Source: Prasinococcaceae sp. CCMP 1430 (lineage: Eukaryota > Plantae > Prasinodermophyta). From it: a stretch of DNA of 46,728 nucleotides. The stretch lies in contig RQSC01001147.1 in the NCBI GenBank assembly GCA_013416795.1, positions 36,481 through 83,208 on the forward strand. The letters run 5' to 3'. The notes below the pieces were generated by a model, which worked only from the letters and a program-made list of their open reading frames with translations, made no database searches and was not told where the DNA came from. The translations under genes were made by a program, and so were the position numbers. This document shows, piece by piece, positions 1 through 5,806 of the stretch (positions are counted from its first letter, which is position 1; every line of letters begins with the position of its first letter).

Positions 1-477
1 CGGCGCCGAGCGCTGGCGGCGGCCGCCGACGGCGGCAAGGCGGCGGGCGGCAAGAAGCGCGGGCGGGGCTTCGGTGCCTCCTCGGACCCGGTGCAGGATG
101 CGCTCATCTCGGGTCTGAGCGAGGTCGCGCAGACGTCGGGGCGGACCCCGAGCACCCCGACGACGGTGCTCGGCGCGGCCACGGACGACGAGGCCAAGTG
201 GGCCGAGCTCGACGCCAAGGTGAACGAGTACCCCATCCTGCGGAGCTTCAAGGCCATCGGCACGGGCGGCGACGACTTCGTGGCGGCGATGGGCGCGGCG
301 GCCGCCGGCGCGCTGGGCCGAGACGCGCTCGCCGCCGAGCAGCTGAGCGCGCGCCCGTCCTCCGGCGGCAAGTACATCGCCGTCACCGTCGGGCCGCTGC
401 GCATCGAGTCGTCGGAGCAGCTGCAGGCAGTGTACAAGGCCATGCAGGCGGACGGCCGCATGAAGTACTTCCTGTAG
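1..477 (+). CDS. DUF493/YbeD-like small protein, probably plastid-targeted; 5' partial
   Basis: Frame is open from base 1 to TAG at 475-477. The segment EYPILRSFKAIG...RPSSGGKYIAVTVG...SEQLQAVYKAM...MKYFL follows the DUF493 pattern. GC3 is strongly biased. Confidence 0.75.
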   Translation, partial: RRRALAAAADGGKAAGGKKRGRGFGASSDPVQDALISGLSEVAQTSGRTPSTPTTVLGAATDDEAKWAELDAKVNEYPILRSFKAIGTGGDDFVAAMGAAAAGALGRDALAAEQLSARPSSGGKYIAVTVGPLRIESSEQLQAVYKAMQADGRMKYFL

Positions 478-1528: not shown

Positions 1529-1546
1529 AAAAAAAAGGCCAAAAAA
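1529..1546 (-). terminator. RNA polymerase III oligo-T terminator of the tRNA-Arg gene
   Basis: T6 (1546-1541) and T8 (1536-1529) on the minus strand, about 25 nt downstream of the predicted discriminator base. Confidence 0.7.
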
Positions 1547-1570: not shown

Positions 1571-1720
1571 CGTCAACGACGGGAATTTCGTCTCGAACCC
1601 CCGATGCACATCCGGGTGGTGTCGTGAAAACCTCGAAGTCGCGCGGCGCCGCGCGCGCGGCGCCGGTCCCGCAATCCCCGGATTAGAAGTCCGATGCCTT
1701 GTCCATTAGGCCACGAAGAC
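1571..1720 (-). tRNA. tRNA-Arg(UCU) with two non-canonical T-loop introns; exons 1720-1668, 1637-1632, 1584-1571
   Basis: Spliced 73-mer GTCTTCGTGGCCTAATGGACAAGGCATCGGACTTCTAATCCGGGGATTGCGGG|TTCGAG|TCCCGTCGTTGACG. D-stem GCCT/AGGC; anticodon stem TCGGA/TCCGG with TCT at 1687-1685; T-stem GCGGG/CCCGT; acceptor stem 5/7 paired; G73. BHB-like motifs at both introns and oligo-T downstream. Confidence 0.85.
1590..1599 (-). promoter_or_regulatory. B-box-like element GGTTCGAGAC inside tRNA intron 2
   Basis: Matches the Pol III B-box consensus GTTCRANNC. The gene's native B-box is split by the introns. Confidence 0.55.
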
Positions 1721-2788: not shown

Positions 2789-2882
2789 GCCACCCACGGG
2801 CACGGGCACGGCCACGGCCACGGCGCCACGGCCACAGCGCCACGGCCGCGGCGCCACGGCCATGGCGCCACGGCCGCGGCCG
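2789..2882. repeat. Degenerate CCACGG/GCGCCACGG tandem repeat at the gap edge
   Basis: Repeated cacgg/ccacgg/ccgcgg units are directly visible. They may have caused the assembly gap. Confidence 0.7.
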
Positions 2883-3250
2883 ACGAGGTCCGGCATGCGT
2901 CCATCCAAACCCGGCACTTACAGTCCCATCCCGACACTCCGCGGCGCCACCGCCACGGGACCCCCTTCCCCCCGTCCGACCAGCGGAGAGGATCAGGCCG
3001 TCCTGCGCTTCCTGGCGCCGCCCTTGGCGCTGTTCATGAGCTGCGCGTGCGTCGGTGCCATGCTGCGCGGCGGAATGTACGGCAGCTGCGGCATGTTCGC
3101 GCGGCGGCGGATGAGCTCCGGCCCGCGCTCCTTCAGCTCGGCGACTGTCCTCGTGCCCAGCACACGAAAACACACACTAAACACTAAGACGCGCTCGACT
3201 CCCCCGCCAAACCGAACCCCCCACCGCAGCGGCCACCGCCGTCCGTCATC

Positions 3251-5806
3251 ATGGGGCGCAACAGCAACAAGCGCCGCAAGGGCGGCCAGCGCACGCAGAA
3301 GCGCGACTTCAAGAAGGGCGGCGGCGGCCGCGAGGGCGAGGCGAAGCGCAGGCGGTACGACGCCGACCCCGCGCAGCGCGCGGCCAGCGCGCAGGCGTCG
3401 GAGGCGTTCATCGAGTACTACAAGGCGCAGAACATCGTGGGCGAGGCCGACGGCGAGTGGGACGCCCTCGTGGCGTGCATGAAGACGCCGCTCCCGGCGT
3501 CCTTCCGCATCAACGGCAGCGGGCAGTTCGCCGCGGGCGTCAAGGCGGGCTTCGAGAGGCGCTTCTCGGGGCTCATGGGCGCCAGCGCCGACGGCGACGA
3601 GGGCACCAACAGCTACACGGACGACGCCGGCGAGCGCGTGGTGGTGCCGCCGCCGCGCGCGCTGCCCTGGTACCCCGGCGGCCTCGCGTGGCAGGTCAAC
3701 CTCAGCCGCCACCAGCTGCGCCGCCTGCCGCAGTTCGCCGAGCTGCACGAGTACATCAAGCGCGAGAACGAGGTGGGCACCATCACGCGGCAGGAGGCGG
3801 TGTCCATGATACCGCCCCTGCTGCTGGACGTCCAGCCGCACCACAACGTGCTCGACATGTGCGCCGCGCCGGGCTCCAAGACCTTCCAGCTCCTCGAGAA
3901 GCTCCACGCGGGCGAGGGCGAGCCCACGGGCATCGTGGTGGCCAACGACGTCAACGTGCAGCGCTGCCACCTGCTCATCCACCAGACGAAGCGCGTGAAC
4001 AGCGCCAACCTGCTGGTGACGCAGCACGAGGCGCAGTCCTTCCCCATGGTGGGGCGCCGCTGGGTGGAGGGCCGCCCCGACGACTCGGAGGCCGTGCGCT
4101 TCGACCGCGTGCTGTGCGACGTGCCGTGCTCGGGCGACGGCACCATCCGCAAGGCGCCCGACATCTGGCGCAAGTGGAACGTCGCGAGCGCCAACGGCCT
4201 CCACCGCCTGCAGACGCGCATCGCGCAGCGCGGCGCGCGCCTCCTGCGCGTGGGCGGGCGCCTGGTGTACTCCACGTGCTCGCTGAACCCCATCGAGAAC
4301 GAGGCGGTGGTCGCCGAGCTGCTGCGCTCCTCCAAGGGCGCGCTCAAGCTGCTCGACGTGTCCGCCGAGCTCCCCGAGCTGCGGCGCAACCCGGGCGTCG
4401 GCGAGTGGCGCGTCAAGGGGCGCGACCGGTGGTACGGCACCCTCGCCGACGTCGACCACGACCGCGACCGCATGGTCAGCGCCAGCTTCTTCCCGCCCAA
4501 GGACTACTACGACCCGGACGTGTACGACGAGGCGCTCGCGCAGGCCAAGGCCGCCGCCGAGGAGGAGGCGAAGGAGAAGGCGGAGGAGGCGGAGGACCAG
4601 GCGCAGCAGCAGAAGCGCTCGCCAGAGGACATCGCGATGGAGACCGCGCGCGCCGTGGCGGCCAGGCAGCACGCGGAGCTCCCGCTGCCGCTGGAGCGCT
4701 GCATGCGCCTGCTGCCGCACCACCAGGACACCGGCGGCTTCTTCGTGGCGGTGATGGAGAAGGTGGCCGAGTGGCCCAAGGACGTGCGGAGGAAGATCGG
4801 CGCGAAGCAGGCCATCGCCGCGCTGAGGGGCGAGGCCGACCCGGCGGAGCTCGCGCGCGTCGCCGCGGAGGAGGAGCGGAGGCAGGCCAAGGAGAGCGCC
4901 GAGAAGGACGCCAGGATCGCGGCGAAGAGGAAGGCCGAGGAGGAGGAAGCGGCGGCGGCGGCGGCGGCCGAGGGCGGCGCGGGGGGGGCGCAGGAGGGCG
5001 CCGCGGCCGGCGCGGCCGACGGGGGCAAGTACAAGGAGAAGCGGCAGGGGCACCACAAGGGCATCGACCCGCTGATCATGTACAATGACGCGGCGGTGAA
5101 CGCCAGCATACGCGCGTTCTACGGCCTGGCGGAGGGCGCGTTCCCGATGGAGAGCCAGCTGCTGGTGCGCTCGATAGGCGGGCTGCCCAAGCGCATCTAC
5201 TACGTGTCCAAGCCCGTGGCGGATCTGATCGCGCTCAACGAGAAGACGCACGAGCTGAAGGTGGTGGTGGTGGGCGTCAAGATGTTCGAGCGCCAGGAGG
5301 TCAAGGACGGCAGCGTGGCGTGCGCGTACCGGCTCGCGCAGGAGGGGCTCAGCTGGCTGGAGGGCGTCATGACCAAGCAGGTGCTGCGTCTCACCCTGGC
5401 CGAGATGCACACGATGCTCGCCACGCGCTCGCAGCCGCGCCACTACTTCGAGGGCGCCACGGGCGAGGCGTTGGACGCCCTCTCCAAGGGCTGCTGCGTC
5501 ATCCGCCTGCGCGACGGGGAGGCGCTGCCCGAGGGCACCGTCGCAGGCGCCGCGCCCGTGTCCGTCCCCTGCTGGAAGGGCCCCGCCAGCCTGAACCTCC
5601 TCATCACCTCCACCGACGCGCACGTCATCCTCGAGCAGCTGGGCGGCAAGAAGGAGAGCGAGCCCAAGGTGGACAAGCCCGCCGAGGCTGCGGCGGCCAA
5701 GGTCGAGGTCGAAGGTGAGGGGCCCGCCCAGGCGAAGGCCGAGGGGCCCGCCCAGGCGAAGGCCGAAGGAGAGGGCGCGCCCGCGCCGATGGAGGCTGAG
5801 GCGTAG
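3251..5806 (+). CDS. NSUN2: tRNA (cytosine-5)-methyltransferase, NSUN2/Trm4 family; intronless, 851 aa
   Basis: Motifs VLDMCAAPGSKT, VVANDV, FDRVLCDVPCSGDGT, GGRLVYSTCSLNPIENEAVV and LPHHQDTGGFFVAV. Confidence 0.95.
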   Translation: MGRNSNKRRKGGQRTQKRDFKKGGGGREGEAKRRRYDADPAQRAASAQASEAFIEYYKAQNIVGEADGEWDALVACMKTPLPASFRINGSGQFAAGVKAGFERRFSGLMGASADGDEGTNSYTDDAGERVVVPPPRALPWYPGGLAWQVNLSRHQLRRLPQFAELHEYIKRENEVGTITRQEAVSMIPPLLLDVQPHHNVLDMCAAPGSKTFQLLEKLHAGEGEPTGIVVANDVNVQRCHLLIHQTKRVNSANLLVTQHEAQSFPMVGRRWVEGRPDDSEAVRFDRVLCDVPCSGDGTIRKAPDIWRKWNVASANGLHRLQTRIAQRGARLLRVGGRLVYSTCSLNPIENEAVVAELLRSSKGALKLLDVSAELPELRRNPGVGEWRVKGRDRWYGTLADVDHDRDRMVSASFFPPKDYYDPDVYDEALAQAKAAAEEEAKEKAEEAEDQAQQQKRSPEDIAMETARAVAARQHAELPLPLERCMRLLPHHQDTGGFFVAVMEKVAEWPKDVRRKIGAKQAIAALRGEADPAELARVAAEEERRQAKESAEKDARIAAKRKAEEEEAAAAAAAEGGAGGAQEGAAAGAADGGKYKEKRQGHHKGIDPLIMYNDAAVNASIRAFYGLAEGAFPMESQLLVRSIGGLPKRIYYVSKPVADLIALNEKTHELKVVVVGVKMFERQEVKDGSVACAYRLAQEGLSWLEGVMTKQVLRLTLAEMHTMLATRSQPRHYFEGATGEALDALSKGCCVIRLRDGEALPEGTVAGAAPVSVPCWKGPASLNLLITSTDAHVILEQLGGKKESEPKVDKPAEAAAAKVEVEGEGPAQAKAEGPAQAKAEGEGAPAPMEAEA

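Follow-up and report, generated by a model that had tools for sequence, protein, structure and literature searches.

A candidate nuclear tRNA-Arg(UCU) gene with two predicted introns in one T-arm in the early-branching green alga Prasinoderma coloniale

Ectopic and multiple introns in nuclear tRNA genes are documented in red algae, and they also occur in nucleomorphs (PMC4090602). In Cyanidioschyzon merolae, nuclear tRNA genes carry one to three ectopic introns of 11-69 nt with strict or relaxed bulge-helix-bulge motifs, including four introns located in the T-loop and one in the T-stem; these genes have interrupted internal Pol III boxes, their introns are removed in an order that follows motif stability, and validation was by northern blot and RT-PCR (PMC3728597). 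Nuclear tRNA genes of Chondrus crispus have introns in the T-loop (58/59) and the D-loop (20/21), also validated by RT-PCR (PlantRNA 2.0, 10.1101/2021.12.21.473619). In this species, essential tRNA genes are labeled pseudogenes by tRNAscan-SE owing to the T-loop insert, and the inserts are spliced to give CCA-ended tRNAs (10.1101/2021.12.21.473619). Multi-intron tRNA genes of Crenarchaeota (Thermoproteales) contain introns at 53/54, 56/57, 59/60 and other sites, with up to three per gene (PMC4090602, PMC4033280), and archaeal cases in which the motif of one intron forms only after another has been removed are cited in the C. merolae study (PMC3728597). Among green algae, the Mamiellales (Ostreococcus and Micromonas) possess tRNA genes permuted at 37/38, including tRNA-Arg(TCT) of O. 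tauri (Maruyama et al. 2010, tabulated in PMC3978253), and according to a 2014 review green algae have almost no atypical tRNA introns (PMC3978253). In a 2026 review on the tRNA genes of photosynthetic organisms (PMC13578239), we found no mention of Prasinoderma, and the paper describing the Prasinoderma coloniale genome (PMC7455551) yielded no information on its nuclear tRNA genes.

In this study, we analyzed a 46.7-kb stretch of genomic DNA (hereafter the window, meaning the whole stretch) which sequence comparison places in P. coloniale, an early-branching green alga (Prasinodermophyta). The locus of interest is a candidate tRNA-Arg(UCU) gene of cytosolic type in the nuclear genome, with three exons in colinear order (53, 6 and 14 nt; Table 1), and we consider that it is probably a working gene whose predicted transcript is spliced twice. 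Its predicted local layout, with two introns in one T-arm and a 6-nt exon between them, is unusual. Division of a tRNA gene into three pieces by two inserts that fold into the archaeal-type splice signal is known from red algae and archaea and is apparently unreported for green algae.

Table 1. Features of the candidate tRNA-Arg(UCU) locus, in order along the minus strand (window coordinates; introns and exon borders as predicted).
Feature	Coordinates	Strand	Description	Basis
Exon 1	1668..1720	-	tRNA positions 1-53 (1720 to 1668): 5' acceptor strand, D-arm, anticodon arm, 5-nt variable loop, T-stem 5' strand	Read from sequence; Rfam RF00005 partial match; ARAGORN after joining; family profile
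A-box-like element	1702..1713	-	tRNA positions 8-19, TGGCCTAATGGA	Comparison with consensus TRGCNNAGTGG
Intron 1	1638..1667	-	30 nt, site 53/54; relaxed bulge-helix-bulge	Geometry script; local fold
Exon 2	1632..1637	-	6-nt micro-exon TTCGAG, T-loop positions 54-59	
Intron 2	1585..1631	-	47 nt, site 59/60; strict hBHBh' after loss of intron 1	
Near-consensus B-box copy	1589..1599	-	GGTTCGAGACG, within intron 2; includes second TTCGAG (1597-1592)	
Exon 3	1571..1584	-	U60, T-stem 3' strand (61-65), 3' acceptor strand (66-72), discriminator G73	
Oligo-T runs, candidate Pol III terminators	1529..1546	-	T6 1541-1546, T8 1529-1536	

Comparison with the described systems revealed both shared and distinct features. 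First, the P. coloniale gene resembles those of C. merolae in having predicted ectopic introns with strict or relaxed motifs, sites in the T-arm and interrupted Pol III boxes; it differs in belonging to the green lineage, in having both introns in a single T-arm with only 6 nt of exon left between them, and in being predicted here from sequence. Second, a T-loop insert in a nuclear tRNA gene is also what is seen in C. crispus, whose sites, however, are fixed at 20/21 and 58/59 with at most one ectopic intron per gene, whereas the P. coloniale sites are 53/54 and 59/60 within one arm. Third, these two insertion sites are identical to crenarchaeal ones, and hBHBh' as well as relaxed motifs are found in both; however, cleavage in Crenarchaeota is by endonucleases of the (alpha-beta)2 or related types and CCA is often gene-encoded, whereas the P. 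coloniale gene is of eukaryotic nuclear, cytosolic tRNA type with a candidate Pol III terminator. Finally, as in the Mamiellales, a green alga appears to have a tRNA gene that requires endonuclease processing beyond a simple 37/38 intron, but unlike the permuted genes of that group, the P. coloniale gene is colinear and has two predicted ectopic introns. A circularly permuted layout was considered and ruled out, because the exons run in the order 1-53, 54-59 and 60-73.

The initial annotation, made from the letters of the window, had proposed a three-exon tRNA-Arg(UCU) with introns at 53/54 and 59/60, and all in silico tests that we ran were in agreement with it. The coordinates, the insertion sites and the lengths of the two introns and the micro-exon (30, 47 and 6 nt) were all exact. 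It had also been anticipated that standard scans would miss the gene, and this was the case for the raw locus: ARAGORN reported zero tRNAs in the raw window, and Rfam at the gathering score gave no match at the tRNA locus. With relaxed thresholds, Rfam returned one sub-threshold tRNA match (1720-1652; 26.2 bits against a gathering score of 29), which aligned well only up to position 53. When the exons were joined, ARAGORN identified a tRNA-Arg(tct) whose D, anticodon and T arms are regular, which is the 73-nt cloverleaf that had been claimed. The D, anticodon and T arms of the joined 73-mer have 4, 5 and 5 bp, respectively, the 7-nt anticodon loop reads U33-UCU-A37 (the anticodon lies at 1685-1687, within exon 1), and the universal bases U8, A14, G18 G19, A21, U54 U55 C56, A58 and C61 are present. 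The acceptor stem is paired at five of its seven positions, with adjacent mismatches U4.U69 and U5.U68 in the ARAGORN cloverleaf. No better 3' exon was found elsewhere in the window, and near the gene there was no other 3' exon that would pair the acceptor strand completely; window-wide matches were at the chance level.

To place the joined sequence within its family, we used 91 uninterrupted tRNA-Arg(UCU) genes of eukaryotic/giant-virus type, obtained by a pattern scan of viral contigs, and a sequence profile that was built from 71 distinct uninterrupted members and scored by nhmmer. The unspliced locus scored 49.8 bits; removal of intron 2 alone raised this to 51.1 bits, removal of intron 1 alone to 57.8 bits and joining of all three exons to 67.2 bits. 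The exons joined without the micro-exon scored 51.1 bits, and the family members themselves ranged from 58.8 to 76.3 bits (median 70.3). Each excision lifted the score, and the joined sequence fell inside the family range. The T-loop TTCGAGT is the commonest in the family (53 of the 91 genes) and is exactly what exon 2 and the first base of exon 3 rebuild. The whole rebuilt T-arm, GCGGG-TTCGAGT-CCCGT, including its G49.U65 wobble, is letter-identical to that of the nearest uninterrupted relatives, the closest of which matches the joined 73-mer at 61 of 73 positions. At the 35 columns conserved in at least 95% of the 71 relatives, the joined 73-mer showed no deviation, although only about 16 of these columns are independent because some 19 were fixed by the search pattern. 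With regard to the acceptor stem, 60 of the 71 relatives have no unpaired position, 11 have one and none has two; the U5.U68 mismatch is common to the P. coloniale gene and its nearest relative.

We also scanned metagenomes with a pattern that allows an insert after the 5' strand of the T-stem, which gave 32 more tRNA-Arg(UCU) loci. None of these 32 loci (JGI contigs) carried an intron, all being uninterrupted with C54, and the unspliced locus itself was absent from the scanned contigs. In these 32 genes, C54 replaces the near-universal T54, the T-loop reads CTCGAGT or CTTGAGT, and the D-arm has exactly the sequence found in the Prasinoderma gene.

The splice signals were analyzed with a geometry script that considers a 4-bp helix, cuts two bases 3' of each helix strand, an inner helix in the intron and an outer helix in the exons. 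For intron 2, the bulge-helix-bulge had been described as a textbook case, and the script recovered it exactly so: U54-G57 pairs with CGAA (4 bp), the two 3-nt bulges are A58 G59/g and a u/U60 (the slash marking the cut), and the outer helix is the 5-bp T-stem; the inner helix has 4 bp, including two G.U pairs. This motif corresponds to the geometry of the canonical 37/38 intron moved onto the T-arm, and among all site pairs in the precursor free of intron 1, the 59/60 pair was the only one with a strict motif. Of random 47-mers from the window placed at 59/60, 0.10% formed a 4-bp central helix together with an inner helix of 4 bp or more. The energy of the motif is -15.6 kcal/mol, and the minimum-energy fold keeps the central helix and shifts the inner helix, which results in a 6-nt bulge.

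The motif of intron 1 had been described as relaxed, consisting of a UGCG/CGCG helix and a 22-nt perfect palindrome (1644-1665), and this description held. Its 4-bp helix is formed by U48-G51 with CGCG, both cuts lie two bases 3' of the helix strands, and the inner hairpin has 9 perfect base pairs. It departs from the strict motif in having a 4-nt 5' bulge (G52 G53/a c) and in lacking an outer helix. When the 5' site was fixed at 53, eight different 3' sites yielded a 4-bp helix, owing to the (GC)n-like character of the insert; thus, the 4-bp helix by itself is weak evidence. The long hairpin, on the other hand, was obtained at the proposed site only. Of random 30-mers from the window placed at 53/54, 0.44% formed a 4-bp central helix together with an inner helix of 4 bp or more, and 0.056% did so if an inner helix of at least 9 bp was demanded. 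The local minimum-energy fold is the proposed structure (-23.8 kcal/mol). Folding energies of the locus are ordinary for GC-rich DNA (z-scores of -0.2 to -0.4 against dinucleotide shuffles), and we dropped thermodynamic stability as a line of evidence because these z-scores are near zero. Since the energies are no better than those of shuffled sequences, the signal is the geometry at fixed sites rather than stability. The palindrome of intron 1 was also considered as a repeated mobile element, and no second copy of it was found in the window.

Based on these features, a processing pathway can be proposed, of which transcription, both cleavages, the cleavage order and the role in translation are steps that we infer. 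Pol III would use the intact A box, possibly helped by the B-box-like copy in intron 2, and transcribe the gene as far as the T6/T8 runs, and the tRNA splicing endonuclease would cleave the precursor at the bulge-helix-bulge motifs. Intron 1 would probably be excised first, because the T-stem cannot form in its presence, given that the intron 1 helix uses G49-G51, and because its motif is the more stable one (-23.8 vs -15.6 kcal/mol), as C. merolae processes the stabler motif first (PMC3728597). After ligation, the T-stem would form and complete the strict hBHBh' for intron 2; a second ligation, end trimming and CCA addition should then yield a 73-nt tRNA decoding AGA, a rare codon. In such a pathway, the second P. 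coloniale motif would not be strict until the first splice had taken place, whereas in C. merolae the majority of introns fold on their own. AGA accounts for about 1% of Arg codons in the likely genes of the window, yet it is used; thus, a tRNA with the UCU anticodon should be needed, with low demand.

The A box of Pol III type-2 promoters has the consensus TRGCNNAGTGG. In the P. coloniale gene the A box is intact, and the exonic B box is broken by both introns. The B-box copy in intron 2 has one mismatch, lies approximately 100 nt from the A box and belongs to a repeat in which nt 25-40 of intron 2 match tRNA positions 44-59 at 13 of 16 positions. Such a copy would be expected by chance in about 0.5% of 47-nt stretches, a figure that comes from a post hoc test. 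It may represent a Pol III promoter element that has been relocated, or the scar of a partial duplication that created the intron, and any promoter function is putative. Downstream, the T6 and T8 runs begin 25 nt after G73. Such runs are rare in the window: the 45.8 kb of minus-strand sequence contain only 10 stretches of at least T6, two of them at the tRNA locus. The intact A box and the downstream T6/T8 runs fit a Pol III gene.

Several other observations were made in the flanking DNA. No TATA-like element was found within 40 nt upstream of the gene. An AT-rich block lies at 1811-1847 on the minus strand, approximately 91 to 127 nt upstream of the tRNA start and amid DNA of 70% GC; it seems too distant for the usual TATA-like element of tRNA promoters. 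The 3' trailer at 1558-1569 repeats the exon 1/intron 1 junction at 1664-1675 (ATTGCGGG followed by TCCG or ACCG) at 11 of 12 positions, which is weakly significant, with approximately 0.1 such matches expected by chance in 281 nt.

The strongest competitor of the working, twice-spliced gene is a dead tRNA-Arg(UCU) gene, whose T-arm was broken by two insertions or local duplications, whose acceptor stem has mutated, and whose working counterpart is encoded elsewhere; we regard it as unlikely, with arguments on both sides. The two adjacent U.U mismatches in the acceptor stem are outside the family range and agree with decay, but the 35 near-invariant positions carry no substitution at all. Traces of local duplication are present both in intron 2 (the 13/16 match to the tRNA) and between the trailer and the exon 1/intron 1 junction (the 11/12 match), and because the T-loop sequence is nearly palindromic, a duplicated piece of it would give a UUCG/CGAA helix without any selection. 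However, the splice-site geometry is right at both inserts, with a probability of about 10^-3 each under the random-insert null, and the exon ends restore the exact T-arm of the family. Selection on the gene may be weak given how little AGA is used (about 1% of Arg codons), and T-arm insertions in eukaryotes are usually read as pseudogenes (PMC4090602); the candidate terminator, on the other hand, has been kept.

A second possibility concerns the splicing scheme rather than the product. The identical mature tRNA would result if the second TTCGAG within intron 2 served as the micro-exon, in which case site 53/54 would hold an intron of 70 nt and site 59/60 one of 7 nt (ACGAAAT). Once the long intron is gone, the 7-nt insert would form a helix-loop variant with UUCG/CGAA, in which the 5' site lies in a 3-nt loop, the 3' site lies in a 3-nt bulge and the T-stem provides the outer helix. 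In a cryptophyte nucleomorph, splicing of introns down to 3 nt in length has been reported (PMC4090602). The 70-nt intron, however, has no bulge-helix-bulge (three of the four helix pairs, and neither an inner nor an outer helix), whereas the scheme with introns of 30 and 47 nt has a motif at both. We rejected the former because its long intron has no motif, and we consider it quite improbable. Slightly less credible still is a tRNA-derived element that makes no tRNA (a TFIIIC-binding/boundary site or a SINE-like remnant with A and B boxes), which would suit the A box, the near-consensus B-box copy and the broken exonic B box but has no second copy in the window, or a match of the 3' pieces by pure chance, which hardly accounts for an exact family T-arm and correct splice geometry occurring together.

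If splicing of the P. coloniale gene proceeds as predicted, the tRNA set of a key early-branching green alga is larger than standard tRNA scans report, and the rule that eukaryotic tRNA introns occur at 37/38 only fails in a second lineage with primary plastids. It would also become testable whether loose substrate choice by the algal splicing endonuclease is ancestral or convergent. With its 6-nt exon and a splicing order imposed by structure, the gene would be a compact substrate for enzymology. A broader reading, which we put forward tentatively as possible though not the expected outcome, is that ectopic bulge-helix-bulge introns break up a large part of the nuclear tRNA genes of P. coloniale, as they do in C. 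merolae; the present gene would then be an extreme case, with two T-arm introns, a 6-nt exon, an obligatory splicing order and a B box moved into an intron. The lineage of P. coloniale branches before the split of chlorophytes and streptophytes. If such genome-wide fragmentation is true, a broad-specificity, archaeal-like tRNA splicing endonuclease would have been present in the ancestor of red and green algae, or would have arisen twice, and the internal T-arm copies would point to partial tandem duplication as a route of intron birth.

A green-algal origin of the DNA had been guessed, and the guess was right. The window contains a gene for an NSUN2-like tRNA cytosine-5 methyltransferase at 3251-5806 on the plus strand (ORF 3251-5803; PF01189, PF25376 and PF25378), whose ORF clusters at 90% identity with the P. 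coloniale protein PRCOL_00004940 of EukProt (818 aa in that model vs 851 aa here). The GC content of the window is about 68%, which agrees with the published 69.8% for P. coloniale (PMC7455551).

Environmental copies of the tRNA locus were not recovered: the TARA contigs that carry the NSUN2-like gene (99.1-99.3% identical) all end 130-250 nt upstream of that gene. Since environmental contigs are about 99.2% identical to the window, they would give little comparative power. Similarity searches and exact look-ups with spurious ORFs over the tRNA locus gave no match, and in a representative search with the DUF493 gene described below all matches had at most 54% identity.

Some further features of the window were observed near the tRNA gene. 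A DUF493 (YbeD-like) protein is encoded at positions 1-477 (plus strand; Pfam, 68 bits), where the window start truncates it to its C-terminal part. An assembly gap of 803 N occupies 1986-2788, at a distance of 265 nt upstream from the tRNA gene. To the right of this gap, 367 bases (2789-3155) match neither the TARA contigs nor the JGI transcript-like contig; the TARA and JGI contigs can be aligned to the window from 3156/3161 rightwards only (99.1-100%) and have a different sequence to the left, which may reflect a mis-join or a strain difference. The NSUN2-like ORF is 100% identical to the JGI transcript-like contig. Finally, a complex (CA)n / ACGCGTGTAC microsatellite is located at 1100-1300, and the several sub-threshold Rfam matches to microRNA families that it produces are low-complexity artefacts.
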